Below, piece after piece: positions 2,767 to 49,419 of a stretch of 64,000 nucleotides of DNA (within the stretch, counting starts at the first letter, position 1; each line of letters begins with the position of its first letter). Under the pieces are notes generated by a model, which saw only the letters and a list, made by a program, of their open reading frames with translations, did no database searches and had not been told where the DNA came from. The stretch comes from Orbicella franksi (taxonomy: Eukaryota). Location: the NCBI GenBank assembly GCA_964199315.1, contig OZ116698.1, positions 23,374,001 through 23,438,000 of the forward strand, written 5' to 3'. A program made the translations under genes and the position numbers.

Positions 2767-5700
2767 ATGTCGACAAGGTGATCAAAATCACTTACAGCGG
2801 TTTGATGTAAATTAAGGAGAAAAAGGAATAGAAAGTTGCCAAGCTTACTGTATTGGCTCAACTGATGGCAATTTAAATGATTTTTTTTCCTCAGCACTGA
2901 AATCCTTATTTGCCAACCCGCTCTCGACGCTGGCTTTCTGACGTTTGCTTCGGTATTCATCGCGGTATGTGTGTTAATATAGTTCCACATGATACAGTGG
3001 CGTTTAATTGCCATTGAGAGTACGTGGTGGTACCACGTGACTTAGTTTGACAATTAAGTGCGACAGACACGTGCTGGATTTTCACAATCAATATTTTGCT
3101 TCTTTAGCTTATTATCATCTTGGTTCTCTCTTTTTTAACTCAACGGAGGAGGAACGCGACGCTGTGCGGTAAACCTATCACAAGACCGGGATTGTGTATG
3201 TAAGTACATTATTCATTTTGCTTTCTTTCGTTTTATTGGCTGCTCATCCAGCCCTGCACCATCTGAATTCAGTTTTGTTAAAATAGTCATTTGAGAGTCA
3301 GAAACCTGATGATACCTCCCCTTATCAATGTTGCTTGAAGTCATGATTACTGCTACCGGACTTGAAATTCGGAGGTCGCGGGTTCCAGTTCCGCTCTGAC
3401 CACGAAGCTGGCGTTGATTCTCGGTAGACCCAAGTTCAACTCCACGGTAATGTGCGTAGATAGCCTGTTGGTCTGCCTCCCGCCAATTAGGATTTTTAAG
3501 CCTGTTTCAGTGTTATGTTTAGTTCATATTTTTGTTTCTTTCAGTTTGTGGCATGCTTGTGAACTAGCTAGGTGTACCTTAACGCATTGATCACTGTAAA
3601 CATTATTACACTCAATTACTGATATATACAGCAACTTTGTAACGACAGAGAAAGAGGGGAGGGGAGGGGGGAGGTCCGACTGAAACTTATGTACTTAATA
3701 TTAACTAAGTAAGCTTTTTTTTTAGCCCTGTCAACTTGGTAGACAGTTACGAAAACAGGTTTGCCTTTGCGTGCGCGTTTGGTGCCACAACAACGAGATG
3801 CTTGTTTATCCTGCTTATGGGTGACTATTCCGCGATCTTCACTCCAGAAATGAACGAATGGTTGAAAGATCCTGCAATTCCTAGCTACACTGCCAGTAAG
3901 TTTTCAGAGAGGATTAAAGCTGAGGAATGGCCAGTTCCCTCTATAAGATGCGCCTGCAGGGAATCATGGTTATTTCATTCATCATCTTAGCCTGGATATT
4001 TGTTTTACATACATACATACAACTGCCATGATTCCCTGCAGGTCCGTCTCATGGAGAAAATGGGCTATTATCTCCTCGAGCCACCGGTTTAACTGATCAG
4101 ATGGAAAAACAAATCGCGACTTGGTCAGGCATATGTTAGTAATTTATATTTAATGTCAGTAACACTGGACGTGCTTGAGCAATCTCCTGAGCGCCTATTT
4201 AATTAAATTAATTAAATAAGATATTAGAAGTTTTTGTCACACAGTTGCTTTGACATCCAATCAAAGCTAACTGTGCTGCTGGAATATTGACACTGAGGTT
4301 GCAGATTTTGCAGATAGCGACAATTAATTCCAGATATAAGTTCGGAGGTGACGTAAGGAAATATATTATGCAGAAACTGACTATTGTAGGAATTCTTTAC
4401 GGTACGAAAAAAACTGACTACTGTGAGGACGTTGTACGATCCAAAAAAACTGTCTATTGTCAAAGTTTGTACGTGTTTTCCTGCTCTTGGCTGGCTGGTT
4501 TCGTGTACACGCCTTTAGTTCTCATTGGCGTATTAGGCTTTTCACTGTTTACATTGTACGACTGTGGATCGTTGTCATTTACATGGATTTGGGATTATAA
4601 TCCTTCAAAAACGGTTCCCAGTCTCTTCTGTCACGGGACATGTCTAGTCACATCTCGTAGGAAAAGTGCTATAGCTAATATTATATCCGTGGTAAACGTC
4701 TTTAACTAATTGTCGTTAACTTCTCTTAATTACTCTTTCACAACCGCCGTTAAAAGAGTCTTAAATTGAGAAGAAGATTCCAAGGAAAACTGCTTTCAGT
4801 ATCAACACGGCACGCGAAAAAATGAAGACGTTTTTACCTTTAAAAACTGATGCAGTTTTTAAATGATAATTGGATTTTGTCAGAAAGATGTAGATGTGTT
4901 TTTCTTTTTCCTTAGTTTGTTGGAAGATCTTGGCCATGGTGGTCATCGGAATCGGGTATTATCCACTGTTTGCTTGCATGGCAACTGACTACAAGATCAC
5001 TGGCCTTGTTATTGGCTTCCTTTATTCTCTCATGTGGTTAGTATGATTTGATTTGTCGTTGCACTTTGAGCAATAATTGGGTAAGATTTCGGAACCTGAA
5101 ATCCCTGGAAAGCCCTAATGTGTGTTTGTTTTAACTACCGGGTTAAGTAGCGTTAAAGTGCTGGACTCTGAACCTTCGAACCCTGGCAGCGTTCATTGTC
5201 AATACACTGTATTATCCAACTATTTTTCATTAATTCTGTTTGTATAAGTAGTCTTTTTGGCGTGTGTGTGTGCTTTACGTGCTGTTGCAAGTGTCTTTTT
5301 CTCATTTTCTCTTCTAATGTGACCCAAATAAATAATTGCTTTAATCACTAAGAATGGCTGTCCAGTCTTATTAGCCCGTTTATGTTATTTTATTTTAAAC
5401 TTATTTTTGTATACTTACATTTTAAGTGTGAGTACAAATAAAGTTCCTCTTGTTGTTGTTAATTTTATTTCATGATGATTAAACTCTCGTGCTGGTACTG
5501 TTTTCCTTTACAGGATTTCCTTTGAAGCTGCTCAATACATCCAGTGTCCATCCTACACCTCATCGGTAAGAAGATTACGAGGATTCGTTCGTTTATCAGT
5601 CGACTTAATTAGGGCCATCGCGTTGATTTTTGAGACAGTGATGTTGCTATTCTTGCTTATACGATAGTCGTCTAGAACCTTATTAGATTTATGTTCAACC

Positions 5701-14170: not shown

Positions 14171-15983
14171 TTTTGCATGGAAATCTTAATTTTTTGTTCC
14201 TTTTACATGTACGTGTATAAGTTGAAGTGGATGTTTCCCAGCTTGTCTAAAATAGTTTAATACAAAGAGAAATGTTTACTATTACTAATTCTGCATGCGA
14301 GTTGGTCCAAGGCATTGTGTTGTTGTTAAAGAGATACTAGCATGGCGATTTTGCTGCATTTTTGATCATAGCAGAAAGTACCGTCGCTCGCACAGAAAAT
14401 GTTAAATGTTTGTTTACAGTGGTGAATACGCTTAGCTACACCTACCTAGTTCACAGGCATGCCACTTAAGCTAAAAGAAACAAATATTGCAAATGCTGCG
14501 AGATCACCAAGATGAAAATATTAATTAAGTGACTGGAGAGCAAATTGTAATTAGTTTTTAGCGATGTTTTTCCAAGACACGACGACAGACTTCATAAAAG
14601 TCTCTCAGACTTGTTCAATTTGTCTTCGACGCCTTTAGCATACGTAGCTATTAATGTAACATCCCTTGTATAGCTTCAGTTTGAGGGTGTATTTTTTTAA
14701 CAAAACTAGACCATTATGTCTGGGTTTCTATCAGTGAAAATTTGTCTTGGATTTTGACTTTTTGAACTTATGGTCGTGGCCCCTTATGCTCGAGAGTGTG
14801 TGGTTGCAATAATTATTAAGTGGCAGCGATTGTTGCTGGTTAAAGGGATTGAAGGCACTCAGGTAAATTCATAAAAGTGTTTAATGTAAAGATTGCATAC
14901 CCATTATAATACCTTCGGCGTTTCAAATACCACGAGGATTTTAGAAAATACGATTGCTTCCGAAACAAGTTTTTTTCCTAAAGGAACATTTACAATCAAC
15001 CCTATCGGGTGTATGTAATGGTCGACAAGGGCACACGCATGTTATAAGGTGGGGATTGTTTTTAATTACGTTTCCGACCGTCGTAAGACTTGACGAGACG
15101 ACAATATACGTTACGATAATCGTGGGCGTCGTATTTCGAATTTCTTGGAGCTAAAATAAAGTATCAATATATGTTTTGTTGCAACCGGCCATCGGCTGAT
15201 GTAATCCGGTTTAACCTGGTTATTTGATGAACAAAGCCAGTGTTGGACTCCAGATTTCGAGTTCTTTTATTTACGTTTTCGAACAGCAATTATTATGATG
15301 TAAGAATTTCCATTTGAAGAAAGAGGTTTTGGCTTCGAGATTAACTATACATAAAGCAAGGCAAAACGTCCTTCGACAATGTCCTTCGATCTATCTGGGC
15401 TGGAGGGGAGGGTTGGGGGAGTGGTTGGAATCGTGCTCCTATGTAATTTATATGGGCATGTGCCGCCGTAAAGGGGTGGTATCTTGTGCTCCTTTGGTTT
15501 GAAATAGGGGGAAGTGTTAACGTTCATCTACGTTATGCCGTCGAACCTTCACTGAGGCTTTTGGGATTGGACGGACCAACCCAGGTCTGGCAGGGAATAG
15601 TCAAATGTATGCACCTACCCCGTCTTTTTGGGCACCGATCTCCAGCTACATCGACACGTATTCACAACACAAACCAAAGACAGACGCTCCAAACAGCTGT
15701 GCTGTTCTGTCGTTTTGCTTGGTCAACAAATGTGGAGTTGTTTTTGCACCCTTACAGCTGTGAAATGGATGTTTGCAACACCTGTAACACTGAACTGACA
15801 CGATGCAATGATAGTTGCCATAGATCAATCTGACAACTGCAAGAGTTTGTACGATAGTGTGAAAGCTCTCACTGAGTTGCACTATTTCTGTAACTGAATA
15901 TTCATGAACGTTTTTCTCCCTTTTTTATACTTAATTTGATTTCGGACAGTTTCCAGCCAAAGCTTTTTATCAATCCTCTTCAT

Positions 15984-17221: not shown

Positions 17222-17275
17222 GTGTCCCGTAGAAATGCCTTCAGCCACACTGTTTCGGCATTTGTTCAAAGAGTC

Positions 17276-19305
17276 ATGAGAGCTTACGTTCTTCTCCTGC
17301 TGGTGGCTTTCGCCTCCTACATCAACGCCGAGGGCTATGTACGAGTGTGTTACCACACAAACTGGTCTCAATATCGTCCGGGTGCCGGCAAGTTCTTTCC
17401 TGAAAACATCGATCCTCACCTATGTACCCATTTAATGTACTCATTTGCAAAGATCGACAGGAGCAACAAACTGGCCATGTACGAGTGGAATGACGACAAG
17501 TTGTACCCAAGGTTTAACGCCTTAAAACAGAAAAACCGTGAACTCAAAACACTGTTGGCTGTAGGAGGATGGAACCACGAAAATCACAACAGCCCATTTT
17601 CCAAGATGGTCAAAACCGCGGCTTCTAGAAAGGTATTGCCACACCTCCACCTTTTCTTACACAGCTTCTATCATCAATAACTTGTCTTGATGCCTCATAC
17701 TTTAACTCTAATTCCCCGAACATCGTGTTCAAGTATACGTTTTTTAAAAAAAATAAAGGAGTGTTACGTTCATTCTAAATTTATCACTTTTTACCTTTCT
17801 ACCTTTTTGCTTTGTGTTTTTGCCTTCGCGACATGTGCTCATGATTATACAGGATGTGTTCTCGTCCCTTATATGTGCTGTCGTTCTTAACGGGTTCTTT
17901 GTAGAGCAAATATTCTATTTCTTCTCTGAGTGATTTTTCCTCTTGCATTGAAACTCCTGTTAATCTAAGCCTGACGATTAGTGTTAAATGTGTTTAAATA
18001 TTTAACTATACTGTTCCGAACTTCAAGCACCTTGCCAAAGTATAATAAACATTATATTTTATCATTCGTATTGATCACTTTTGTTATCTTTTATATATAT
18101 GATAACTATGTTACATGTATGTAAAATCATTTAACTGGACCGAAACATGGTGCCAAAGGCTACCGAGAGTCGTGACTCTCCTTTTACAAGTATTCGACAA
18201 CTTCGGGTTTCATTTAACTAATAGCAATAATGTCTTGAGTTATAATGGAGTATCGTCATTTCCACTCTTTCCATACCAGGTATTTATCGACTCGTCAATT
18301 GAGATGCTGCGAACATGGGGCTTTGACGGTCTCGATTTGGACTGGGAGTATCCTGGAGTTCGTGGAGGCTCACCACCCGGAGATAAACAGAAGTTCACCA
18401 TTCTCTGTCAAGAGCTGTTGAACGCCTTCAAGGCTGAAGCAGCCCAAACTGGAAAGCCCCGCCTATTGCTGACTGCTGCTGTGGCAGCTGGCTATAAAAC
18501 TATCGATAAAGCCTATGAAGTGGCCAAACTTGGTCCATTGCTGGACATACTCAACCTGATGACCTATGACCTTCACGGCACCTGGGACGACGTGACGGGA
18601 CATCACACAGCCATGGTAGGCGATGACAAGCTGACAGTGCCATTCGCAGTCCAATACTGGATTGACAAGGGATTTCCAGCCAACAAGATCGCTTTGGGTC
18701 TTGCTACATATGGACGAGCATTCAGCCTGAAAGACCCTGGCAACAGCGGCCTTGGTGCTCCCAAACATGACTGGCAGAAACCCCATAAAGGTCAATATAC
18801 CAGAGAGGCTGGATTCTTGGCTTACTACGAGATCTGCAAACTTGGCTTAAATATTGTCTCGAATAACGCCGTGATGGCTCCTTACGGCCACAAGGGTACC
18901 ATCTGGGTTGGCTTCGATGATAAACACAGTTTGCATTACAAGGTAAAAGAGGTAATTATGAAAAAAGGTCTCATGGGATCGATGTTCTGGGCCCTCGACT
19001 TGGACGATTTTAGTGGCAGTCAATGTGGCCAAGGTAAATATCCTCTTATTAACGCTGTCAAGAAGTATTTAGGTGGCTACACACCCCCGCCACGCCCCAC
19101 TGAGCTAACTCCACCGCCTACCACTCAAGGGCCTACCGAAGGACCTGGACCTGCTACGACCATGCCACCAACCCAAGGGCCTAAACCACCAACCGATGGT
19201 TGCGTAGCACTCCCACCTTATGACAAGCAATCGGGCATGAATGAATGGTGTCAAATCAACTGTGCTGCTGGAAATTGTCCTTCGTCACACTGCAATTGCA
19301 GCTAG
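17276..19305 (+). CDS. Secreted GH18 chitinase: signal peptide, catalytic TIM barrel, Pro/Thr linker, C-terminal 6-Cys module; 2 exons, ~460 aa
   Basis: Exons 17276-17632 and 18280-19305, phase-0 GT-AG intron. Signal peptide [18 protein letters not shown]; [11 protein letters not shown]; [15 protein letters not shown]; intact catalytic motif [11 protein letters not shown] (DxxDxDxE); LMTYDLHG; [18 protein letters not shown] at 19361. Confidence 0.95.
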
Positions 19306-23771: not shown

Positions 23772-26016
23772 ATGCGAGCTTACATCCTTCTCCTGCTGGT
23801 GGCTTTCGCCTCCTACATCAGCTTCAAGAGCTACGTACGAGTGTGTTACCACACAAACTGGTCTCAATATTGTCCGGGTGCCGGCAAGTTTTTTCCTGAA
23901 AACATCGATCCTCACCTTTGTACCCATTTAATGTACTCATTTGCAAAGATCGACAGGAGCAACAAACTGGCCATGTACGAGTGGAATGCGAAAAGTTGCA
24001 CCCAAGGTTTAACGCCTTAAAACGGGAAAACCCTGACTTCAAAACACTGTTGGCTGTAGGAGGATGGAGCCACGAAAATCATGATAGCCTATTTTCCAAG
24101 ATGGTCAAATCGCGGCTTCTAGAAAGGTACTGCAATAGTTCCACGCACTCACATTTCTTACTTTTTTTTTAGTATGGCTTGATTGCCGAGTAACATTTTT
24201 ACACGTATCATATACGAAGCCAAACATCTGTCAAATTCTGTCATACGTATAATTCTGATATTCCAAAAAAACTGTTGGACTGGTTTTCTGTTTTGTTAAC
24301 TGGCCTTTTCAGTTGCTGTGGTAGGACAATTCAAGTATCAGCGTAGTTAGCTTTTGCTTTTGTTTTGTTTTGTTTTGTTTTTTTTGTCGTTGTCCAGCCC
24401 TAAAACAATGAGTATTTTTTTTATGGTCTTTACCCAGCTTTTTCTTCTTGAATATTCAGTAAACATATGTATCTGCATTGTGTAACCAGATCAAACGTAC
24501 ATTGACATTAAATTTCGTAGTTATACGGTTGGATAAACTGGCGTAAATAGTAAAAACAAATACGAAAAGTTTCACGGTTGCTCAAACTTCAGAACGAGAG
24601 CATATGGTACAGAATTGCCATGAATGATATGCCAAGCTACTCGGTAAATTATGCTAATGCCATCTCGGGCTTTGACTATTGGCCTCCTTTAATTGATATT
24701 TTTTACACTGACGAAGTGTGTTTTTTTAATCTGAAACTCAAAAGTCCATATTTTTTCATTGGCATCTGTGTGCAAACGTTTTCATTTTCTTATGTGTTCT
24801 CGTTAGACGTTTTTAACACTATTCCGTCCACGGCAGGTATTTTATTGACTCGGCAATAATGATGCTGCGAAAATAGGGCTTTGACGGTCTCGATCTGGAT
24901 TGGGAGTATCCTGGAGTTCGTGGAGGCTCACCACCCGGAGATAAACAGAAGTTCACCATTCTCTGTCAAGAGCTGTTGAACGCCTTCAAGACCGAAGCAG
25001 CCCAAACTAGAAAGCCTCGCCTCTTACTGACTGCTGCTGTGGCAGCTGGCTATGCAACTATCGATAAAGCCTATGAGGTACGCAAACTTGGTCCATTACT
25101 GAACATACTCAACCTGATGACCTATGACCTTCACAGCAACTGGGATCCGGTGACCGGACATCACACAGCCATGGCAGGCAATGACAGGATGACAGCGCCA
25201 TTTGCAGCCCAGTACTGGATTGACAAGGGATTTCCAACCAACATACTCAACCTGATGACCTTTGACCTTCACGGCAACTGGGACGACGTGACGGGACATC
25301 ACACAGCCATGGTAGGCGATGACAAGCTGACAGTGCCATTCGCAGTCCAATACTGGATTGACAAGGGATTTCCAGCCAACAAGATCGCTTTGGGTCTTGC
25401 TACATATGGACGAGCATTCAGCTTGAAAGACCCAAGCAACAGCGGCCTTGGTGCTTCCAAGCATCCTTGGCAGCAACCCCACAAAGGTCAATATACCAGA
25501 GAGGCTGGATTCTTGGCTTACTACGAGATCTGCAAACTTGGCTTAACTGTTGTCACGAAAAATGCCGCAAAGGCTCCTTACGGCCACCAGGGTACCATCT
25601 GGGTTGGCTATGATGATAAACTCAGTTTGGAATACATGGTGAAAGAGGTAATTAAGAGTAAAGGTCTCGTGGGAGCGATGTTCTGGGCTCTCGACTTGGA
25701 TGATTTCTGTGGTAGTCAATGTGGCCAAGGTAAATATCCCCTGATTAACGCAGTTAAGAAGTATTTGGGTGACTACACACCACCAAAGCCGCCAACTCAA
25801 GGACCCCAGCCAACAACCGATGGCCCTCAACCGCCTACTGACCGACCAGGTCCAGTTACGAAAGCGCGTCCGGTGCCACCCACGAACGGACCAACTGCGC
25901 CACCCTCTGGATGCGAACTACTGCCACCTTATGACACAAACCCAGCCATGGGTGCATGGTGTGTAGCCAACGGTGCTGCTGGATATTGTCCTGCGTCCCA
26001 CTGCAAGTGCAGCTAG
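23772..26016 (+). pseudogene. GH18 chitinase pseudogene, tandem paralogue of 17276-19305
   Basis: Same two-exon layout (exon 1 to ~24126, exon 2 from ~24837). Lesions versus copy 1: 1-nt deletion near 23990 (aatgacgacaag -> aatgcgaaaag), 1-nt deletion near 24110 (aaaaccgcg -> aaatcgcg), 1-nt insertion near 24840 (gtatttatc -> gtattttatt), TGG->TAG near 24874, an in-frame 138-bp duplication (25102-25239 / 25240-25377), and Cys->Gly in the C-terminal module. Confidence 0.88.
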
Positions 26017-27732: not shown

Positions 27733-30700
27733 ATGAAAGACATACAGACTGTAAGGTAAGGGAATACAGCAAGTTTGTCCTGCCGAGTTCTATGCTTTAA
27801 GTTCATATCATAACACATACGATTGTTATTATCCTCTCAAATGATTTGTTTCTCTAGGTTTTTCCTTATTGCCTTTGTGCTCGTGTTATGGCCAAACATA
27901 ATAATCACGGTAAGTAAAACTCCTTTTTTATTCTTCCGGTGTACGTGAATTAATAGCACAGCATTTTTTTTTCTTGATATAAAGTATTTATCAGAAAAAA
28001 AAATTCAAATCGAATTATGTGGTGCTATCGTTTCAATCCAAACAGATTTAAAACCCAGACGCAATGCATTTTAGGTATGTTGACTTAGAAAGCTTAAGAA
28101 TCCTTAAATATAAGGTAAATTAGCTTGCTAGGGGATTATAGAATAATCGCAAGATTGATGCGAAAATACCACACATTCCTTTTATTCTCGCAGCATTTCT
28201 ATTTCGACCGCGTTCAATGATATATTTAAAATAAGTGAGGAAATTTAGTTATTTCACCTTAAGTTAGCGCTCCAAAATGAAGCCATTAAATTTGCTTCAG
28301 AAAGGAAAAGCATGTCCGTCGAAGGCTCCTTGTCAGCAAAAAAAGAGTCTTGTTTATTCACAACCCACCGAGAATTATCGTCAGTAGTGAGATTTCGGCT
28401 GGTGGCATTGAAAACTAAAACCCAGAGTATACAACAAAAAGTAACTACATACTGTGACCTAATCTCGGGTCAATTTTCGCGGTCTGGTTTTAGTTTTACC
28501 GGTATGAGTCCATTCGTATCTACAAAAGGCCAGGATTTTTCTTCAGAAATAAATAATCAACTAGCCATCAAATAAAGTGTGGGGTTTTACTATCAGCTCA
28601 TTTTTTGCTGTTTCTTAACAAGCCAGCTTTGTAGAAAAGTTAACTATCATGTGGCTGATATTAACCTTTTCATCAATTATAGTATAAGTTTCTTGACGAA
28701 AGCTGTCGTAAAGATCTCCGAACAAGGCTAGATGAAATATTTGTAACACAACTCTCAGACTCTAAGAATGTCTGCGAGGCAGACTCCCAGTAGAGAACGT
28801 GCTGACATTTGACTGACGCTGGGAATTCGTTAAAAGAAATGTTTCATAGTTTCATCTAACGAGACTGAAAAATGTATTCCGGGGGAGAAGGAGATAGGCT
28901 GCGAAGTTTTTGGAGGGGGTGGGGGGTGGGGGAAGGGGGCTGTGCGGCGCGTTTCTCAAAACACTCGCCCAAATCCAAAGTATATGGCTTTCCATACCTT
29001 ATTTCAGAACTGACCAAAAAATCAATACCATGCTCCTAACCTGAGCCAATAATCGATACCATATTTCAGAGTACGCACACGTCTCTTATAAAACTGTGAC
29101 CTCAGCCACCAGGAATGGTACTGCATCTGTCGCAAATATATTTTAATACAAGGACAGGAACGAATTAACAGACGAAAAGTCTGTTCTATTTTGCAATCAA
29201 TCCTTGTCTACTTTTGTGTCTTGATCGTTGCTTCATTCTTGATTTAATTTGCTAGCAGGGTGTTAAGAGACTAATCCAATTAAGTTTGATTGCAGTCGCG
29301 TACCACGGATGCTTAGCGTGACGGGGGAATAGTAGCACTTGGTAATCTGGTTTACATCTTAGTCCACATCTAACCCACTAACTGTTATTTCTGCTTCATT
29401 TATCCACTGAGAAAACAAACTATAGAGCAATTAGAGCTGACAAATGGCCTCCTTCCATTTTTCGCATACGTGGTACGTGAAAATGACCGACGATCGATAA
29501 GACATTTTGAGGAGTGTGGAAATTTACCAGCAGGATCATCGTTCCGGTTGCTTGCTTAAACATTTTATGGAAATTTACCACCTGAATTTCATCTCCTACC
29601 TTATACCCCCAGGGCAGGATAATGCCTATCAAAAGTTCGGTAGTACTGTGTGCGGCCCCAACGAGTATGCTTTTTCATTCACTTTGATCTGAAGTTGTGT
29701 ATCGTTTGCACTCATCTCTGGTCTGAAATTGAATGTAATGTAACGTTTGCACAAAACTAGTTTTCCTCTTTAAAAACGGGTAATAAGAAGGCCTTCTCAA
29801 AGCAAAAGACAGCAGTTTTCCTCAGTTCCTACCGAGCAGATTTTCGTTGAATTAGTCACCGTTTTTTTTTTTTTTTGGAGAGGGGGTGGGTGGTTGGGTA
29901 GACCACTCAATAAGTAACATTTTTTGGTGTGATCTCCTGGTACGTTTGTTTTAAACATATAGCATTCTTAGAAATTCTGAACCTTTTTTAAGCAGGCGGA
30001 AGTCGAGCGCAACGAAAATGAGAGCCACGAACTTCGACAGAATTCCACAGACGGCGAAGAGTTTTACGAACAATTTTACGAATGGTCGGTCTGGAGTCCC
30101 TGCTCTAGAACGTGTGGCATTGGAATAAAATTCAAAGGGCAACTATGCCTCAGGTAAGAAGATTATTGATGTCCTCCATTATTGAAGCATTTAATAACCC
30201 TGGGAACCCCCAACCCTTTAATAAGCTGTAACATTAATCTGTACGTTTCAATGAACAGAGAAAACAAGGCACTGTGCGAAAAGAAATCCCGGATATATCA
30301 AACTTGTAATACACAGGTGAGAACCCACGCGTAGTTTATAGTTAATAGTCTGCATAAAACCGTCTATGGATGTCCTGTGCTCCAAATAAGAGGATAAGTT
30401 CGATTTCCACCGCCCTCTCAAGTTCTGTCTGCGTTCCTCCCAGCGCGGGCTCCATTCCCGAACAGCGGCTGGTAGTCGAGCCTATTAAGGGGACATCTCA
30501 TTTGACTATATTCACAATCATCCAAGTCGAAGGAAACAAGAAGCTAAACAGATTTCCTTATTTTCTACAGGCTTGTCCTCAAAGGAGCAAGAATTTCCGT
30601 GATGTACAGTGTGGACAGTATAATGGCAGAGATATCTTTATCAATGGCGAAAGAGCAACGTGGAGATCATTTGTGAGAGGTATAAAAGCCACTGTCGACA

Positions 30701-31740
30701 AAAATTTTAAAAAGCTTTATTGGGCATATAATGGTTATCTAACAAACGCAGCTCTGTACTAAAATTGTTCGCTAGCGAAGACTAAGAGGCACATCTTTTA
30801 TCATTTTAGAAAACCTCATTTTGTTGCCATTAATGCCTAAAGTTCTCTGAATTAACGGTATAACTAAACCAGGACATTACCATGGTAAACCAGCAAGTGG
30901 AGGAAAAAGTGCACCATGCCTGCTTTTTTTTTTTAGTAGCCATCTTGATTAGTCTGTCCAAACCATCTGAGAGACCGTGGAATGATTACTACACCATTGA
31001 TCAATGTCAGTCAGTTACATAAGGGTAGGCTCAATAAAAAAAACAAAAAACGCCGGTAACTCGAATTAACGCCGGAGACGTTTATTTTATACTTCTCTCT
31101 GTGGACCCGGCGTTTATTTGGGACCCAGCGTTTAATCAAGAAAATACTCTAACTCCGGGTTTATTGAACACCACCAGGTGACAATCAGTGCCTGTTGTTC
31201 TGCTATCCGTACGGAGAAGATTTATTTTATTACTTTGGAAGAGCGAGAGATGGGACCCAGTGCTCCAAAGAACCTTACGGCGTTTGTGTTTTCGGAAGAT
31301 GCAAGGTAATGATTTGAAAACTATAAACCGAAACGGAAACAGAAGTTATGTACGTAATGAAGTTGTTTACCGTGAATTATAACACAATCTTAACGGTTTG
31401 GTTGGTTTACGACGTTAAAAGGAGCGCAGTCACGGTATTTTGAGTTATTTTGTCCTCGAACAAAATGACTTTTAAATTGAAAGAAACCTGAAAATAATAG
31501 TTTTATAAGATAGACAAACACCAAAGAAACAATAATAAACCATAAAGGCACAAGGATGATTGAGGATGGAGACGATTGATTACAAACGACGAAGTTGAAA
31601 AACTTAGGCTTAACTTTTCAAGATAAACAAACCTTGAAGTATCTCCTTTAAACATCAGCCTTATGATGTCCCAGATGTCCATCACATAACTTTATTGGAG
31701 AGAAGTGACTCAACCTACATATATATATATATATATATAT

Positions 31741-39400: not shown

Positions 39401-42400
39401 GCCTTCTGGCTAAAACAATTTCGTCGTCGAAGCATGAAGAGCTGTCACCACCGCCTCTTCATGTCAGCTTAACAAGGAGAGTGGAACCAACGATAAGCCC
39501 TATGAATTCTTTGTCAAGTTTATCACTTATGCAAAGCATGCTAGTGTCAGTATTTTCACAATCTACCTCAGCACAGGAAATACAACCCACGCAAAGCCAT
39601 CCGTATTCTCTTACGAGTTCCATGTCATTACAACGTTTGCTATCATTACTCTCTTGGTGGTTTACCTCAGCACTGCAAAGGGAAGGCACAGAAAATCTCG
39701 TAGGTTCTGGGCGAAGTTCACCATTAACGAAATGTATCTCATCATCCATGTTTCCACTGCTTAGCTCAACACTACCCGTAGAACCCACAAAAAGCTTTTT
39801 GGATGCTTCAACAAGTTCTACATTGTTAAAGGTCAGTCCCTCGCAAAAAATGGGGGCCATAACAAGCCTGCCAGTTTCTTTGAGACGTTTGTCTTCAGGG
39901 CAACATACAGGAAATGCAGTATTCCCGCAATTAAGCTCTCCACTGGAAGAAAAAGTCACGACAAGCCCTATCAATTCTTGGGCCAGTTTGCCGTCAAGAC
40001 AACACCTAATGGAAGTATCGACTGTGATAAGCCCCTTGGATTCTTTACAAAGTTCGTCGTCAAGTCAGTATATCTTGTTGTCGCCTTCCACATGGCCTAG
40101 TTCAGCACTAAAAGAACAATCCACTACGTGCTATTTGGAATCTTCAGCCAGTTTGCTGTCAAGACAACAAATTTTATCACCAGTAAATTCGAGCGCTACC
40201 TCTGCATTGAATGTAGAATCAACGACAGACGTCGTCAATTTTTCAAGATCTTCATCTTCAAAGCATCAAATTCCATCGTTGCCCTCTCTACAGGTTAACT
40301 CGGCACCTAAAAATGAAATCACTAGAAGTTTTATGGATTCATTACGACCTTCTCCGTCAAAGCAAGAAATGGCATCTTTGTCTTCTACAGAGTTTAATGC
40401 TGCATCCAAGATACAAATCACGGGAAGCATTATGGGTCCAGCAACAACCACTTCCTCAAAGCATGACATGCCATCTTTGTCGGTTCCACAAGCTAGCTTA
40501 ACACCAAAGGAAGAGCCAAAGACAGGTGTTATGAGTTCATTTGCAACATCCTCGTCAAAGTTAGAAATACCATCTTCGCCTTCTTCGCAGTTTAGCTCAA
40601 CACCTAACTGCGAAATTACGAAAAGCCTTAGGGATTCAGTGAAAACTTCTTTAACAAAGCATGAAATGCAATCATTGCAGCCTCCAAAGGCAAACTCCAC
40701 ATCTAAGGTAGTAGACACGATAGGCTTTATGAATTCATCAAGAACTTCCTCGTCAAAGCAGGAAATGCAATCGTTGGGGTCTTCACACTTGAGCTCAACA
40801 TCTAAACTCGAAGTCACAAGAAGCCTTACGGATTCAATGAGGACCTCTATATCAAAGCACGAAAAGCAACCACTGCTGCCTCCAAAGGCAAGCGCAACAC
40901 TTAAACTCGAAGTCACAACAAGCCTAACAGATTCAATGAGACCTTCTTTATTAAAGCATGAAATGCAATCACTGCTGTCTCTAAAGGCAAGCTCCACACC
41001 TAAACTCGAAGTCACAACAAGCCTTTTGGATTCAATAATAGCTTCGTCAAAGCATGAAATGCCATTAGTGCCGTCTCCACCGCTTAACTCGGTACCTACA
41101 GTACATGTAGAACTCTCGACCACCATTATGGCTGCATTAACAACCTTATCTTCCATGGAAAAAATACCATCTTTGTCGTCTCCACAGGCTACATCAGCAC
41201 CGAAAGTAGAATTCATAACAAGCCTCTTGGAATCATTCAGGACTTCCTTGTCAAAGTCATCGCCCTCTCCACTGTCAAGTTCAGCACCGAAAGTAGAAAT
41301 AAAGACAAGTGTTATGGATTTGTTTTCCATTTCCTCGTTTAAGCATAGAACGCCATCGCTACCACCACAACAGTTAAGCTCAGGCGCCACGACAATGATT
41401 CTGGAGGATTCTATAACAAGCTCGTCATCGCATCATCACCCATTACCTACAACAGAATTCACGACAGCGATTATTGGTTCATTAACTGTCTCATTGTCAA
41501 AGCAAGAAATGCCATCTTTAGCGTCTCCACAAGCTAAATCGTTACCGAAAGTAGAAATCACGACAAGTCTCATGGAATCATTTAGAACTTCCTTGTCAAA
41601 ATCATCGCCCTCTCTACTGCCAAATTCAACACCAAAAGTGGAAATAAAGACGAGTGTTTTGGATCTATTTCCAACTTCCTCGTTAAAACATGAAACTCCA
41701 TCATCATCAACTTTACAGTTAAACTCAGAAGTCACGACCAGGATTCAGGAGGATCCTTTAACAAGCGCATCATTACATCATCACCAAATATTGGAAGTGG
41801 CATCCACGAAAAGTTTAAAGGTTATCTCAACAAGTTCGTCGTCAAGGCAACACGTGATATCTTCATTTTCTCCACATTTAAGCTCTTTAGTGAAAGTAGA
41901 AGCCCCAAATCGTCTTTTGAATTCTTCAAGAGCTCTGTCTTCGAGGCAACGCTCGTTATCATCAACGTTTGCACTGAAAGTAGAATCTTCAATAAACGTT
42001 TTGGATTCTTTAATAAGTTCGTCACCGAGGCAAATATCCCCACAGCCAAGTTCGGCAGTTAAAGAAGAACCCTCGACAACCCTTATGCATTCCGTTACAA
42101 GTTCACCGTCAGGGCATTACATCGTACTCTCAATGTCACCAAGGTTAAGCTCAACGCTGAAAGTTGAAGCCATGACAACCTCAGTTGAATCACTAACAAG
42201 TTCCTTGTCGAGGCAACATATACTTGCGTCGTCTCCGCAGCTAAGTCCACCACTGATAACAGACGCCGCCACAGCAAACATGGATTCTTCGAGGAAGAAA
42301 ATACTATCATCGCGTTCTTCGCAGTTGAACCCCTCAATAGAGGCAGAATACACCTCAGGGCTTAAAGACTCACTGAGACGTTTATCGTCAAGGCAACCCA

Positions 42401-45400
42401 TACTATCATCCACAGCTCCACAATTTAGTTCAGTATTGAAAGTTGACGCCACGACAAGTCACATGGAATCTATGTCAACAGGTTCGTTGTCAAGGTCAGA
42501 TAAGAAAGACAAGCTCTCCCCAAGCCTTGTGGGTTCTTTCACGAGTTCGTTGACAGAACCGTCCCAATACATTGTATTGTCAGTATCAACAGTGCAGACC
42601 TCAAAACTGCCTACGAAACCCTCGGCTAGCAAAGTCAACTCATTGCCTATTCCAAGTATCTTCACGTCGTCAATCTTTAATAAAGAGGATTATACGTTTT
42701 TCACTACTCCAACGTCTTCCCTGTTAAGTTCTACACCGACAATGGAATCGTCACAAAGATTTTTAATCTCATCTAGTTCTTTATATACTAGCGTGTTGCA
42801 AGAAAGATCAACAGCCGATCAATCGGTTAGTTATGAAAGACATTTCACCAATTCCTTAAAAGAGGGCGACTACTCTTTAACCTTGGTTTCCAGAGAGGAA
42901 AGGCACCAAACAGTTACTGCAATAATGGACGCACCAAGCATTCCTTCGTCAGCCTTAAAAACGCAAGTATCGATAATGGTTCCATCAAGTTCGGAACCAG
43001 CGTCAGTGAAAGCGGCTGCTGCTCCAACTCCGACAGCTGTTCAGGAAGAAAAATGTGAGTCATTCTCAGAATGTTAAAAAGTTAAAATGTTAAATGTTGA
43101 ATGTTTATAGTGGTCGATCGCTTAGCTGCAACTAGCTAGTTCTCAGGCATGCCACTTACATGTACACTGAAAGGAAGAAATATTTCAAATAAACATAATA
43201 GGCCTAAAAATCCTAACTGACGGAGGCAGACCAGTTGGCTATTTTCAAACATGACGGAGGAGTGGAATTAACTAGGGTCTACCGAGAAACAACTCTAGCT
43301 TAATGGTCAGCTCAGAGGAAAGGTTTTCCGTCGACGGAAAATATTTTTGCCCGTATCTTACAATAACAGATCTCTAACTCAGATAACATGATGCATATTA
43401 TGGTCTTTACATATCACCTATCGTAAACGTTAAATAGTAATAGTGTCTGGGACAGCCAAAGCCATTCGTACATCTACTGGATGGCAATACGTTATGACTC
43501 GCACCTTTAATTGTAAAGGAGAGAAACGTTTGTGCCATTTAACTTTTACCAATAATTACTCTTTCTTGAGTATGAAATAATAGGGAGGGAAACTTTGAAA
43601 GATGTTTAATTAAAAGTACTAGGAAAGGAAGAGGGGGCGAAAACCGTTACCCTGCTAACAGTGAGATAGGGCAAATTCATACTAATAAATAAATGTCTGT
43701 GTTCCTCTACAGCAACTGAGTGTCCTCCATGTGATTTGTCGCAGCGACCGAAAGAGAAGTACTGTTATAGTGATTATGGTATGTTCGGGGGTTTTCTACT
43801 CTATTTAAATTGATTTTTTACACGTTTAATTATTTTAAATAATCTCGAGTTTAGACCATTGCTCAAAAATTGTCTTGTTTCATATTTGAAATTTTGTAAT
43901 GTTTGAAACATAGTTCTCTTAATTGTTTTAAATTTTTAAGGTAGCCTCTTTGGCAAAAGTGACCAGCATCTAATTTCTCCTCATAAAGTCAGTGTAAAAT
44001 AAAACCTGAAACAGTTCACCAGAATTTGACACTGATCAGGAAGGGAGTTCTTTGTTTGAATGGTCCCTGATTGCCAACTTAGAGCGGTTTTCAATTGATG
44101 GTCGAGAGTAATCAGGAATTACTGTGGTTTTGATTTTGGTTTTACTGCGGTTTGTGATTGGCTGAGTAGTATAATTGGTAAGTAGTTCGTCTGAGTTTGG
44201 TTTTACGACACCCAATAGAAAACCGCTCTAAGGTGAAATTTTCCAGCCCAGTCCTCTTAGGCCAAAATTTATCATCAATAAATGATTTAATGATATAAAA
44301 TGAAAACAGCCAGGAAGATTAATTTCTGGTCTATAGATTAAAAGACATAAAGAAGCTTAGGGGATTCGGAGCCATTCATGAATTTGTCTTGTCAAACAGC
44401 TTCAGTAAAAATTCAAGTAAAACTGTAACTGTTTTTCTTATTTACAGCTGTACTTGTGAGAATCAGATCTGAAGCACTCGCAGTCGAAAATCAAACCTCC
44501 TATGCTACCAAAGTCAGGAAAGTCTACAAAACAAATAAACCGATGAAGAAGAAGCCGGAGATACGATTAAACCACGGAGGATGTAACTGCAGAACGGACC
44601 TCTCGATGAAAAAAGATTATCTTGTGTTTGGTAAACACGTTCCCTGGAACGGGACGATAGGATTCTTAGAGGTTAATAGAGACAGCTTTGTGACCGAATG
44701 GGATGGTACGTTAGAGAAGGAAATAGACCAGTTGGAAGGATATTGCTCACTGAATTCTATGATTCCTACTCCACGCAGGTCATCGACTATTACTTTTAGC
44801 TCTGGTGCATCTATGCATTCCGTGAAGAAAGCAACTACCACAGGTAGGTTATCTTATTCAATCCAGAAAGCAGAATGTTATCATCAAACAATATAAAGGA
44901 CAGTAAGCATCTCTGGTTTAAATTCACATCCACCGGAACACATGGATAGAAAACAAATTTCTGATATCTATTCAACAAATGATAATTACATTTCCGTTTC
45001 CTAACATCCAGCAAGCACTCTGACATTCTTTTAATCTAGCTGTTGCCATGGAGACATAATGTTGCTTAGCAACTTCTGATTTAATCCTTGGGCTCTGTCA
45101 ACGCGAAAAATAAATAATGTTTAAAAAAATGTTGAGCGCCGAACATAGATGAAGGTAAAATATGTTAGGTCATACGCTCGATCGAACCTCCCAATTAAGA
45201 AAAGTTGTTTGATGAGATACCCTTTTCCAAGGTCATAGAAAAAACGAATAGAACATAAATGTTAAAGGAAAATGTGTCAGTTGTCCAAATTTCATGTATC
45301 ACTAAGAACAGTTCAACGTGGAACGAAAAAGATGGGTTTGAAATCCTCGGCAGCGCTAAGTGACCGACGGCGAGCACAGGAATCAGTTCTCCATGTTAAG

Positions 45401-48400
45401 GTGACACTGAGAATGATGATAATTAGTGGTGATTGATCCTCGGCACAAATTAAAATAGTAACAGAATGTCGTTTGATTGACTTTACAGCGTTGCTGTCGA
45501 CTCGCAGTAACATTCAAGTCGAAACGCCTTCTTCACGTAATTGGACAGAAGCTAGTACAACAGAGCCTTCAGCAACAACCAGTGCGGTTGAAGGTTAGTG
45601 TATTTCTGTCCTCAGATTCCCCTCTTGCCAACTAGTTACCGGTAACACCAAACGTTTGAGCGCTTGAGAATTTAAGAGGTTACAGTTTATGACAGCAATG
45701 GCATCTGTAGAGCCATGCAAGAGCGAGAAGCCCATTTGTCTTAGCCTAACTAGAATGCGGTTCTTTCAAACTTACCCTCGTTTGAGGGAAAGTTTGAAGG
45801 GTTAGTATTAAGAAAACCCAAAGCCCCGTTCAGGGCAAATAAAAAGTCGTCTATTAACGATATGTGACTGCGCTCGTTTATTGAGTTCGAACGATTATGC
45901 GGCTTGTTGCTAGCTAGATGGTGTCTCCGCATTGCCAAGTAGATTGTGAATTTCGCATTCTCCATAGAGCCTTCGGGATTTTATCCGTTGCCTCATTTAT
46001 AAATGCCTACTCGCGCTAGTTGGTAGTACGCTACTTCTTGTTGATTCTGTGCTCTAAACGTTACTGTGACGATAAAGGAGCCAATTGTGGCTATAAATGT
46101 TTATTACCTACCATGGATATATAATATTTACTAATTTGTGTTAAGAATGTACTTTTATATGATCGAAAATTTTTGTCTAAACCCAAACATAAAAATGATT
46201 CTTGTTCATTTTCACAGAAAAATGTGGGCCTTGCGAGATTGCTATTAAACGAACCAGAGCTTACTGCACCAGTAATTTTGGTGAGTCAATTCAATGTCAT
46301 TATATCTCAATTTAACCATTGCTAGTGGCAACTCAGCAATTAAAGGATCTCAGTACAAGGGGAAAGATATGTCATTATAATCGGCGTCTTCTTTAGACGC
46401 GTTGTTGAATTTCGTCAATAAAAGGCGGGAAACAGTTTTTTTTTTTAAGAACGACTGGCCCATAACTCTACGCGCACCGCGCACAACCGAGGGACGCCTG
46501 AGGACGAGATAGGATTCTATAAGAAAAAAAAATAATGTAGATCCACTTCTAATGTATTTTTTTGTTGTTGTTGTTGTTTTCTCTCATTCTATTGCAGTGA
46601 TTCATGTCGAGATCTTGTCGGAGGCTATGAACGAATTTAATCACGACGCAAACTATCGCGTCCGCTTAATTCACACCTTCAAGTTGACAAGCGGAGTAAC
46701 AACAGTAAGAAGTGTCTGGATTCTAGGTAATCAATGTCACTGTCCTCTACTTCTCCCTGGAAAACAGTACCTCTTGATGGGTCGGCTGGGAACGCGCGCG
46801 GGCTCATCTGAGCCGATAGCAGAGATAAATCGACAAAGTTACGTCGAAGTATGGAAAGCATCAATAATTCGTCGCCTGCCAGCCTTAATGAAAAGATGTC
46901 CCTTGAAGACAACACAATCTTCTTCGCTTGCAAGGCAGACCACCAGATTAACCACGGGTATATTATACATTTCATATGTGTCATTTGATATAGTTTCAGA
47001 ATCTTTCGTGTTTAATCTGATTATATCTTAACTGATACCCTGCAAGGTCCCTTGGTCTAAACTGTTCAGTTGCCATCGTTTTAAGATTCGTTTTCGACAG
47101 AAATCCGATTAATGTTTTACAGGTCAGTGGGCAGAATTCAAATAACAAAACCCGGCAAATTTTATTGAGCAGTATTTACTTTTAGTTTGAAATATCTCAG
47201 CGTATAATAACGAAAAATAAACCAAACCTAGAATAGTAATCAACCTCAGATTTCTTCTTTATGAAAATTCTTATAACAATCCCTCATGCAAAGAGCAGTT
47301 GCTTTAAGTTTGTTTAAGGAATTCATATGTAGCCAGATAAATCATCGCTCATTTATCTTTATTTTTTTTCTTTTCTTTCGCTTGGTGAATCCGACTAATG
47401 TAGCCGCTGTCCCATCAACAACGGGACCACGAACATCAACAGAAAAGACTTCAAGTCAGTTGCTCACCACCACACAACCAGCATCAACACCACCAGGTAA
47501 ACGTAAGAGCTGAGTGCTAAGCTACATTATAATTCTCACAACTTATTGCTATATATTTCACTTCGTGTTAGTTCTGAGAATTTGGCGGCTCATCAAGACT
47601 TTTCCTAGCGTATGATGTTCTTTATTCTCAACACCTGTATACTCGACAATGTCTTGATATTATCGGGAGAAGGTGTAAGTTCATCACTCTGGAGAATCTT
47701 AATTTACTCTGTGGTAACCGTGCTAGTAAAAAAGCCAACATTGTGATAACAAAAAGTTTTTCAAATACAAACGAGCTTTCTGACAATTCTGAAAGTCAAA
47801 CATAGCTGTATAAAGGCTTTATGTAAATCTAAAATGACATGTTTCCAAGCCCCCAAGGTTCACGGAAAGAGAATTGTAAACGACATTGCGAAAACAAAGA
47901 GGTATCACTTTCATGTTCTACAGAAGTTACGGAGGGGCTCTGCATCAGTTGCGATCTTTCAGATGGCATTTTAGTACTATTTATTATATTTTCCGATATG
48001 ACCATATCTCTTTGAACAGAACACGCAAAGGCAGCAAATTTGTTTCTCTCCCCCTCCATGCATGTCCATGGTTGATGCAAAGTAGTCAAGTGGCAAGGGC
48101 ATTAGATTTCAGATCTGGCTGTTAATGGTTTTTAAGCCCTAGTCTTTCTCTAGATACTTCACCGCAGAGTACTTTGCTAGCGCTGTTACTTAGTTCATTT
48201 GCTATTTTACCTGTAATTGACGATTCCTGTGCTTTACTTACATACATTCTTCTCTTTTCCTACAGTAAAGTGCCGCCGACCCTGCCGAATAACAAAGAAA
48301 CGAAACAAGAGCTACTGCGAAAGTGATTTTGGTAAATAAGCCTACCTTAACTTGAGCAAGTGAAAATTGCTTTATATTTTCTTTCGAATGGATCCCAAGC

Positions 48401-48918
48401 AAATGCATAACCATGTTAAGAAAAACAAGAAGTATAGTTATTCGAGCATTGTACAGGCTCTTCTTTAGATTAAAGGCCAGGCTTAACAACAACTGAAACT
48501 CGTACCATGTTGCCTTTTCAAAGAACCACAGAAACTCATTTTTCAAGCTGTTTCCTCAAAACGTCACATCCTAGCATCTCTTTTAACCATACATGTATCT
48601 TTATTTTACTCTCCAGTTATACGAGCAAGAATATTGCGAGCATCGTTCAATGATAATCATCGAGAAAGAAAATACCTGGTGAGGATCATTAAAGTGTTCA
48701 AAAGCATTGTGGACCTCCAAGTACAGGAGAACATTTTCGTGGTAAATGATGTTTGCCAGTGTCCGAAATTGGAACTTCGAAAACAGTATGTAATCATGGG
48801 AACAGTGGAGACTATGTCCATCACTGATATTCGGCTGGTAATTCCCCCAAGACCGTTTGTTTGGATGTGGAAATCAAGGATGGAAGCAGGACTTGCATCA
48901 GTTTCCTGTGGTACCTGA
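27733..48918 (+). CDS. Giant secreted ADAMTS-like protein (ADAMTSL5-like architecture): signal peptide, TSP1, ADAMTS Cys-rich, spacer, 2 TSP1, ~2095-aa Ser/Thr-rich region, 3 NTR (C345C/TIMP-like) domains; 20 exons, ~3026 aa
   Basis: Phase-compatible exons: 27733-27755, 27858-27909, 29996-30153, 30259-30316, 30571-30679, 31178-31305, 33210-33345, 33478-33552, 33919-34085, 35444-35519, 35993-36355, 36770-43054, 43713-43778, 44448-44843, 45489-45593, 46218-46280, 46598-46957, 47404-47496, 48266-48331, 48617-48918 (sum 9081 nt, open frame). Signal MKDIQTVRFFLIAFVLVLWPNIIIT; WSVWSPCSRTCG; CNTQACPQRSKNFRDVQC; DGTQC; VGCDNKLES...DKCRVCGGNSTTC; IPKGSTSV; NGNRIVNWSG; IQIFGPTSENL; WGSWTACSASCGGG; WSEWGLWDDCSVTCGGG; three CxxC...YCxSD/NF/Y + CxC...Y-L/V-x-x-G NTR units. 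No metalloprotease domain. Exon 35444 has an alternative acceptor nearby. Confidence 0.88.
31719..32966. mobile_element. Foldback element with ~400-bp inverted arms bounded by (AT)n tracts; probably Penelope-like-element derived
   Basis: Arm 31898-32300 is the near-perfect reverse complement of 32532-32942; 231-bp spacer; (AT)n at 31719-31800 and 32941-32966. Each arm carries ctgatgaaggtctaagac[c/a]gaaacgtt. The foldback is seen directly; the Penelope assignment is inferred from this motif. Confidence 0.75.
33682..33845. repeat. Imperfect (GACT/GACC)n microsatellite; (ATT)n at ~33380-33416
   Basis: Direct reading: ctgactgactgattgactgact...ccgaccgaccggctgacc. Confidence 0.9.
34402..35195. mobile_element. 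Tc1/mariner-pogo-type MITE (794 bp) with TA target duplication
   Basis: TIRs cagtggcacctcgatttaacgaa / ttcgttaaatcgaggttccactg; TA on both sides (34400-34401, 35196-35197); repeated subterminal cctcgatataacgaa motifs; no transposase. Confidence 0.9.
43195..43310 (-). mobile_element. SINE fragment, same family as 3345-3510
   Basis: taggcctaaaaatcctaactgacggaggcagaccagttggctat...tctaccgagaa is the reverse complement of the body at ~3420-3505. Confidence 0.65.
44079..44231. mobile_element. Short MITE with TTAGAGCGGTTTTC termini
   Basis: ttagagcggttttcaattg at 44079 / caatagaaaaccgctctaa ending at 44231. Confidence 0.75.
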
Positions 48919-49419
48919 AGAGACTCGAATTTGATCTGCAAAAATATTCATTCGTAGGAGTATATGGTGGTGTATTGTCTCTGCCCCCCCCCCCCCTCCT
49001 ACACACAGTTTGATAATGTGTTTGTTACATGGCAAAAAAACTGCAGAACAGAGAAACTTAACAGGAAAACCATAAAGCTTATAGTATTTACTGTCCGAGA
49101 ATATAAAAAGATGTTTATTTACACGCACTGCGAGTGCCTGATGGAAAATTGCATAGGAGGTATTGCACAAGACCGCTTGCTTCCCGCGCGTTTGACTGGA
49201 AAAGCTTACGTTTCGTATGAGCGTGTGGTATAATACGTGTCTTAATCATAGCATTTACAAATTCCTCCAATGTGACTGTTACATAAACTGCTACATCAGT
49301 TTTGCTTTAATTAATCTGCAAAGTTGTAATCGGACGGTGTAATTGGACAGTTGGCTGTAGTCCAACACGTTGAATGTTATTTTAGTTTTGTTTTGAAAAA
49401 ATTAAGTAATAAACTTAAA

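Follow-up and report, generated by a model that had tools for sequence, protein, structure and literature searches.

To our knowledge, ADAMTSL5 is the least understood of the ADAMTS-like proteins, and we know of no established role for its NTR domain. In bilaterians, it is a secreted protein of about 380–1,160 amino acids (aa) that carries no protease and consists of TSP1, Cys-rich and spacer modules, a linker of 70–410 aa that is mostly charged, and one C-terminal NTR with six cysteines. Papilin has the same protease-less N-terminal ADAMTS cassette, yet there the cassette is followed by arrays of TSP1 and by Kunitz, Ig and PLAC domains, and an NTR is absent. In vertebrates (mouse, human), PMC10850197 (citing Bader et al., 2012) describes ADAMTSL5 as binding fibrillin-1/-2 and heparin, and the linker before its NTR as protease-sensitive, with the NTR released by proteolysis. 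Here, we analyze a gene at positions 27733–48918 of a 64,000-nucleotide stretch of the stony coral Orbicella franksi (contig OZ116698.1, positions 23,374,001–23,438,000; this whole stretch is hereafter “the window”), which shares with bilaterian ADAMTSL5 the secreted, protease-less cassette and the C-terminal six-Cys NTR, but which adds two TSP1 repeats, replaces the linker with a Ser/Thr-rich exon of 2,095 aa and carries three NTRs instead of one.

We consider it likely that this locus is a single 20-exon gene and that its product, a 3,026-aa secreted, non-membrane matrix glycoprotein, is an anthozoan member of the ADAMTSL5 family serving as a matrix tether with glycosaminoglycan-binding NTRs. 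The gene model, for which splice sites were read directly and the frame was verified by script, runs on the + strand from an ATG at 27733 to a TGA at 48916–48918, with GT-AG at every intron, and gives one uninterrupted coding sequence (CDS) of 9,081 nucleotides (nt). From N- to C-terminus, the product comprises a signal peptide, a TSP1 repeat, the ADAMTS Cys-rich and spacer modules, two further TSP1 repeats, the Ser/Thr-rich exon and three NTRs. The original prediction for this locus, made from the letters alone, had the same start, end, 2,095-aa exon and 9.1-kb CDS as the rebuilt model, and every element of its domain list (the cassette, the two extra TSP1 repeats, the Ser/Thr region, the three NTRs and the Ser/Thr linkers between them) was recovered in its place.

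Transcripts connect the central exon with the NTR exons. Four RNA runs were compared with 42960–48950, and the informative contigs came from runs X1 and X6, which belong to different studies. The RNA contigs carry GT..AG joints at 43054>43713, 43778>44448 (both X1 and X6), 44843>45489, 45593>46218, 46957>47404 (X1, X6) and 47496>48266 (X1), and the joint 46280>46598 is carried by one RNA contig. Read along the gene, these joints lead from exon 12 (36770–43054; 6,285 nt) to exons 13–14 (43713–43778, 44448–44843; NTR1 and the start of linker 1; Pfam NTR E 2.1e-9), exon 15 (45489–45593; a 35-aa Ser/Thr linker, 68–97% identical in the orthologous loci L001, L006, L007 and L008), exons 16–17 (46218–46280, 46598–46957; NTR2 and the start of linker 2; Pfam NTR E 5.3e-10), exon 18 (47404–47496; a 31-aa Ser/Thr/Pro linker) and the first of exons 19–20 (48266–48331, 48617–48918; NTR3 and the stop; Pfam NTR E 1.9e-12). 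Some contigs cross several exons: a 563-nt RNA contig spans exons 12, 13 and 14, a 694-nt RNA contig covers exons 15–18 and reaches 22 nt into the end of exon 14, and an X6 contig contains 45485–45591, 46216–46279, 46597–46956 and 47403–47496 in one piece. Exon 20 is covered by an X6 contig, and the 48331>48617 joint is absent among the joints listed. Because RNA joints run from exon 12 to NTR1 and onward, the mucin-like exon and the NTR half belong to one transcript. The same contigs corrected a sequence-only model in which the linker exons 45489–45593 and 47404–47496 were missing.

The link from exon 11 (35993–36355), which encodes the two further TSP1 repeats (WGSWTACSASCGGG and WSEWGLWDDCSVTCGGG; Pfam TSP_1 E 9.5e-22, two stretches), to exon 12 is supported by compatible phase, word shares, conserved adjacency and RefSeq models that join both halves. 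Specifically, a strong donor at 36355 (exonic AAG followed by GTGGGT) is phase-compatible with the acceptor at 36770. The RNA runs contain 0.29–0.54 of the sequence words of exon 11 plus its downstream intron, the exon's own share being 0.47, and runs of unlabelled kind (presumably genomic DNA) contain 0.75–1.00 of these words; the RNA runs also contain 28–50% of the words of 35900–43100, mostly those of exon 12, and these are the same runs that contain exon 11. Adjacency of exons 11 and 12 is conserved in 5 of 5 orthologous loci that cover both (L001, L005, L006, L007, L008), and RefSeq models of the orthologues in Acropora digitifera and Nematostella vectensis have both the TSP1 half and the NTR half in one protein. 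Alternatively, at least two neighboring genes could have been merged here, i.e., a short ADAMTSL-like gene ending after the TSP1 pair and a separate Ser-rich/NTR gene. In favor of such a split, the exon 11–12 joint is without direct observation, a search with exon 11 for spliced open reading frames (ORFs) across that joint returned only unspliced genomic ORFs, and an ATG at 36694 opens a long frame. However, the 25 codons following this ATG have the look of a polypyrimidine tract and do not resemble a signal peptide, the RNA runs contain exon 11 but apparently not its downstream intron, and the NTR exons have neither a start codon nor a signal peptide of their own and are tied to exon 12 by RNA. 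With the strong, phase-compatible donor, the two RefSeq models and the adjacency kept in all five loci also opposing it, we regard a merger of separate genes as highly improbable. The single gene of the original prediction is thus supported: in RNA contigs, the Ser/Thr exon is joined to NTR1 and the chain of joints leads on to NTR3, and the RefSeq orthologues unite the TSP1 and NTR halves.

Upstream of exon 11, the head of the protein has the composition of a protease-less ADAMTS cassette. Exons 1–2 (27733–27755, 27858–27909) provide the start codon and the signal peptide MKDIQTVRFFLIAFVLVLWPNIIIT, which is the sole hydrophobic 19-residue window in the entire protein, and model residue 4 onward aligns with the Nematostella orthologue from its residue 10. 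Exons 3–4 (29996–30153, 30259–30316), conserved in L006, L007 and L008, encode the first TSP1 repeat, with WSVWSPCSRTCG (Pfam TSP_1 E 3.8e-6 for exon 3). The ADAMTS Cys-rich module is assigned to exons 5–7 (30571–30679, 31178–31305, 33210–33345) from weak Pfam matches and the orthologue: single-exon matches to Adt-1 (1.8e-4) and ADAMTS_CR_3 (6.7e-4) both lie under the curated cut-offs, these exons are 75–98% identical in three other coral assemblies, and the orthologue's cassette, when compared with solved structures, matched the TSP1–Cys-rich–spacer (T-C-S) crystal structure of ADAMTS13 (3GHM) at 1e-24. The spacer is encoded by exons 8–10 (33478–33552, 33919–34085, 35444–35519; Pfam ADAMTS_spacer1 E 7e-10 for exon 9), the last of which was located via the L008 orthologue and restores the reading frame; the branch point and acceptor of exon 11 are conserved in L005. 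WxxW and the O-fucosylation motif CSx(S/T)CG are visible in each of the three TSP1 repeats, including the two extra ones for which the original prediction named WxxW. The expected absence of a protease also holds, in that no propeptide, metalloprotease or disintegrin-like domain was found, the signal peptide exons splice directly to TSP1, and the large upstream ORFs scanned, including the nearest, are GH18 chitinases. Another candidate for the last spacer exon, 35817–35921 (LVEHILLYIKKPQDGF...SYNP), has a good acceptor but was rejected, as it offers no donor in the needed phase and its frame is disrupted in L005 by an 8-nt indel.

The case for the ADAMTSL5 family draws on the two ends of the protein separately. 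A profile built only from the three coral NTRs and run against 1.84 billion representative proteins returned cnidarian proteins in its first tier, among them both RefSeq orthologues as well as proteins with several NTRs from Nematostella and Actinostola. The next tier consisted of proteins of 339–921 aa from hemichordates, molluscs, a scorpion, echinoderms and amphioxus, mostly named “ADAMTS-like protein 5”; of ten scanned, all had an NTR and nine had ADAMTS_spacer1 plus NTR, usually together with TSP1 and ADAMTS_CR_3, and the remaining one had TSP1 and NTR only. For the head, the best non-cnidarian BLASTP match was hemichordate ADAMTSL5 (179 bits, 37–39% identity), followed by mollusc ADAMTSL5 and papilin (164 bits). 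As the NTR profile retrieves bilaterian ADAMTSL5 and the head matches agree, we regard the protein as a probable anthozoan member of the ADAMTSL5 family, consistent with the “ADAMTSL5-like” label first given to it. As bilaterian linkers measure 70–410 aa and are not mucin-like, the very large insert is an anthozoan elaboration, as are the added TSP1 pair and the multiplied NTRs.

A papilin or generic ADAMTSL relative that acquired its NTRs independently, with the likeness to ADAMTSL5 arising by convergence, would be compatible with the near-equal papilin score on the head, with papilins ranking first among the long relatives when the Nematostella head is the query (arthropod papilins are 33–36% identical to the coral cassette), and with module boundaries that are all phase 1-1, an exon-shuffling signature. 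The NTR-only profile, however, is blind to the head and still retrieves ADAMTSL5 NTRs ahead of those of netrin, sFRP, PCOLCE and TIMP. In an unrooted NTR tree, NTR2 and NTR3 pair with the two Acropora NTRs (support 98/96 and 99/97) and, together with Nematostella NTR5, are placed with the NTRs of bilaterian ADAMTSL5 at moderate support, while NTR1 lies on a long branch and groups with other sea-anemone NTRs; these positions suggest that the duplications may be old. Pfam scans of the coral exons found no Kunitz, Ig or PLAC domain. Convergence is thus improbable in our estimation, and we favor descent within the ADAMTSL5 family. A word-index search for giant relatives with the Nematostella head returned only papilins, ADAMTS13 and ADAMTSL1, which reflects a limit of that method and not absence. 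With respect to gene structure, all introns downstream of exon 7 are phase 1 with the exception of intron 9, as is typical of extracellular modules that have been shuffled, and the gene is a clean example of how phase-1 exon shuffling builds a giant matrix protein.

The same architecture is found across stony corals and sea anemones. By tblastn, exons 3–20 are colinear in three other coral assemblies (exon 18 is unmatched in L007 and L008), with identities of 56–100% for the domain exons and of 74%, 71% and 33% for the big exon. Exons 10–20 are conserved and colinear in two metagenome contigs, and four shorter metagenome or run contigs keep the exon order for the exons that they cover. In A. 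digitifera, XP_015759282.1 contains the spacer, two TSP1 repeats, about 1,640 aa at 35% S+T and two NTRs; its parts stand in the same order as in O. franksi, and its spacer and TSP1 pair are 59% identical to those of the coral described here. It differs in having only two NTRs, the orthologues of NTR2 and NTR3, and in being truncated at the N-terminus (it starts inside the spacer); these gaps probably stem from an incomplete model and not from true loss of the head and NTR1. In N. vectensis, XP_048583776.1/XP_048583777.1 unite the full cassette, TSP1 repeats, S/T-rich regions and NTRs in one protein with the same part order, the head being 39–43% and the TSP1 pair 51% identical to the coral. 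Here the differences are that an additional S/T segment of 535 aa precedes the TSP1 pair, that a mucin segment is Thr-rich (40% T), and that the NTRs number about five in isoform X1 and fewer in isoform X2, versus three in the coral.

Sea anemones and stony corals therefore have this architecture in common, although automatic names that mislead have concealed it. The original prediction had called the locus the strongest candidate for a new system in the window, which was too strong, since RefSeq already predicts the architecture in N. vectensis and A. digitifera; the coral gene is a lineage-specific elaboration of the known ADAMTSL5 family and not a new system. Literature searches by accession, name and matrix-proteome keywords yielded no characterized orthologue. 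Two other cnidarian proteins, N. vectensis EDO31655.1 (666 aa) and an Actinostola protein (551 aa), consist only of 3–5 tandem NTR modules; part of EDO31655.1 is sequence-identical to NTRs of the “mucin-17” isoform X1, and EDO31655.1 is likely to be an older, fragmentary model of that Nematostella gene. The Nematostella matrisome entry NV2.20821 (“ADAMTS-like metalloprotease-18,” best hit papilin, detected in mesoglea) is a possible orthologue.

The central exon is distinguished by its length and composition. Its open frame holds 2,127 codons (36694–43077), of which the spliced part (36770–43054) encodes the 2,095 aa. It is composed of 22.9% S, 10.8% T, 7.3% P and 10.5% L, i.e., 33.7% S+T and 41% S+T+P, and S+T makes up 30–39% of every 100-aa window. 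Degenerate tandem repeats with periods of 99 and 345 nt (about 33 and 115 aa) run through it, there is no Pfam match, and AlphaFold2, given an alignment of nine orthologues, predicted no secondary structure (pLDDT, the predicted local distance difference test score, 32.7, with all residues <50). The repeats were considered as a folded module, and this was rejected given the pLDDT below 50 throughout and the lack of a Pfam match. Across orthologues, the ratio of non-synonymous to synonymous substitution rates is 0.61–1.02 for exon 12 versus 0.26–0.45 for the domain exons. The exon is nevertheless open at 1,573–2,412 aa in the three coral assemblies and the L001/L002 contigs (shorter ORFs, of 1,243–1,567 aa, are those of small contigs and are possibly truncated), and orthologue composition is near-invariant (S 22–25%, T about 10%, L 9–11%). 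The sequence itself can thus vary almost freely, whereas length class and composition are retained. These properties fit a predicted disordered spacer that is probably O-glycosylated.

With 41% S+T+P and 10.5% Leu, “mucin-like” is a fair description of a Ser-rich, low-complexity region that is not a classic Thr/Pro mucin repeat. A more skeptical reading holds that the region is disordered and Ser-rich but unglycosylated or differently modified (adhesive, phase-separating or mineral-interacting), in which case “mucin” would be a misnomer. In its favor, the scleractinian orthologues are Ser-rich with 10–11% Leu and 6–7.6% Pro, the classic segment with 40% Thr being that of the Nematostella orthologue, and the repeat KxE...SL...DS has amphipathic character. 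On the other side, S+T is uniform along the exon, the region is secreted and flanked by TSP1 O-fucosylation motifs, and the homologous position in Nematostella is a typical Pro/Thr/Ser mucin domain. One version of this reading, a SIBLING-type phosphoprotein modified by secretory kinase, was rejected because S-x-E kinase motifs are depleted in exon 12 (z = −2.2). We therefore treat a non-mucin nature of the region as doubtful, albeit a contender to be taken seriously, and keep to the putatively O-glycosylated spacer. Pfam scans of the exons revealed no VWD, C8, TIL, CK or SEA domain and the protein has no transmembrane segment; lacking the domains of gel-forming or tethered mucins, the RefSeq name “mucin-17” given to the orthologue is not a family assignment.

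The three NTRs each contain six cysteines and are basic, with isoelectric points (pI) of 8.7, 9.65 and 9.9 for NTR1, NTR2 and NTR3, respectively, and they are only 20–26% identical to one another. Coral and ADAMTSL5 NTRs have in common a starting C-x2-C motif, a basic stretch between the second and third Cys, and [FY]C-x-S-D-F. No other ADAMTSL5-type NTR was found in the coral's 497-Mb genome, where the next-best NTR locus is a netrin gene. For the A. digitifera orthologue of NTR3, the predicted fold (pLDDT 90) superposes best on the PCOLCE1 NTR (1UAP; template modelling (TM) score 0.73), with complexes of N-TIMP-1 as second-best matches (TM about 0.65); the likeness to PCOLCE1 NTR and N-TIMP is that of the NTR fold, sequence identity to the coral-type NTR being only 18–22%. 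In other respects these proteins differ from the coral one: PCOLCE has CUB domains, of which the coral protein has none, and TIMP has a mature N-terminal NTR with a free Cys1 plus a C-terminal subdomain, 12 Cys in all, whereas each coral NTR has six Cys and lies inside the chain. In one of the orthologous coral assemblies (L007:16023–16088), the first Cys of NTR1 is a Tyr (EYPPC versus ECPPC), which may reflect either a genuine loss of one disulfide or an error in sequencing.

This comparison bears on the option, raised in the original prediction, that the tail inhibits proteases. Were the three NTR modules TIMP-type metalloproteinase inhibitors, the fold common to NTR and N-TIMP, the rank of the N-TIMP-1 complexes among structural matches and a weak Pfam TIMP match (E 0.013) would be in keeping with that role, and a released PCOLCE NTR fragment reportedly inhibits MMP-2 (matrix metalloproteinase-2). 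Yet TIMP inhibition requires the first Cys as the free N-terminus of the mature chain; since all three coral modules are internal, this mechanism is unavailable to them without processing. A Lys that precedes the first Cys in each NTR was considered as a conserved processing site and rejected, as the residue is not kept in Nematostella, Acropora or L008, and with the position so variable, no conserved processing site is evident across orthologues. The Pfam TIMP match, at 15.8 bits, falls under the 23.1-bit cut-off, sequence searches of solved structures with the NTRs gave netrin-1 and complement C345C modules and no TIMP, and the nearest fold is that of the PCOLCE1 NTR. A TIMP-like inhibitory role is accordingly the least supported functional option, and we consider it quite unlikely; this part of the prediction was not supported, and glycosaminoglycan binding is the function that we favor for the NTRs.

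The proposed function, that of a matrix tether with glycosaminoglycan-binding NTRs, is modeled on ADAMTSL5 of vertebrates, from which the fibrillin-binding head, O-glycosylated stalk and heparan-binding or inhibitory tail of the original prediction were likewise extrapolated. By analogy with its binding to fibrillin-1/-2, the head would dock on matrix fibrils. The central region, if O-glycosylated, would act as a stretched-out spacer with a length of some hundreds of nanometres. Being basic, the NTRs may bind sulfated glycosaminoglycans, as the ADAMTSL5 NTR binds heparin; their basic pI (8.7–9.9) is consistent with such binding and is the sole such datum here. Cleavage in the linkers may shed NTR modules. 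The whole protein could thereby be a long multivalent tether or matrix organizer in the mesoglea, the mucus or the calcifying matrix.

Several observations weigh against the interpretation of the locus as one gene for an ADAMTSL5-family tether. The splices 36355>36770 (exon 11–12) and exon 19–20 lack direct observation, and exons 1–10 are without RNA support, the RNA contigs having been compared over 42960–48950. These contigs are mostly 95–99% identical to the window and so may derive from other strains or close relatives. Raw reads of two poly(A) runs with the same species label (X23, X24) included no exon reads in the ~12% of each that was sampled, which suggests that expression there is low or restricted; the reads match only a 45-nt intronic repeat (44134–44179) and give no information on start, end or strand. 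As for family, the margin between ADAMTSL5 and papilin for the head is small (179 versus 164 bits). The AlphaFold2 alignment of only nine sequences makes the low pLDDT weak evidence of disorder, and 10.5% Leu with only 7% Pro is atypical for a densely O-glycosylated mucin, so that glycosylation is putative. Finally, binding to fibrillin and glycosaminoglycans is a prediction, as is the location of the protein.

We entertain, as a speculation to which we assign little likelihood, that in the common ancestor of sea anemones and stony corals the small, microfibril-associated ADAMTSL5 was rebuilt into a glycoprotein tether of hundreds of nanometres, with its matrix-docking head far away from a string of basic NTRs, which cleavage in the Ser/Thr linkers would shed as diffusible glycosaminoglycan binders or metalloproteinase regulators. 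If true, this would represent a cnidarian-specific way to organize mesoglea, surface mucus or calcifying matrix, with a Ser/Leu-rich form of the stalk specific to calcifying corals. More generally, that the linker was expanded about twenty-fold and the NTR multiplied in anthozoans suggests selection on reach and NTR valency, a pattern that is a usable clue to the function of the ADAMTSL5 family. An orthologue is present in the genetically tractable Nematostella, and function is thus directly testable there; the protein can also be sought in mesoglea, mucus and skeletal-matrix proteomes.

Other features of the window concern its introns and flanks. Rfam at the gathering threshold gave no match anywhere in the window. 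In intron 6, identical 53-aa ORFs on opposite strands (32047–32208, −; 32624–32785, +) form an inverted duplication. Intron 9 contains a 256-codon open frame (34116–34883, +) with repeated PRFNEP...FDITN, and related pieces occur at 35064–35141; it looks like a degraded interspersed element and gave false exon candidates. Repeats in introns 12 and 13 (43084–43359, 43960–44359) reach an RNA-contig k-mer depth of up to 1,750 with loose ends on both sides, and are copies of elements expressed elsewhere; that of intron 12 has relatives at 3396–3604 (−) and 14396–14494. Within it, one X1 RNA contig has a non-canonical CG..AC joint that skips 103 nt (43118–43222), most likely a variant repeat copy from elsewhere and not a splice. 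Upstream of the gene, GH18 chitinase-like ORF groups lie at 17222–19305 and 24976–26016 (+; Pfam Glyco_hydro_18 E 1.8e-63, 7.2e-54 and 8.2e-23); these are probably two tandem genes on the same strand that mark the upstream boundary of the ADAMTSL5-like gene.

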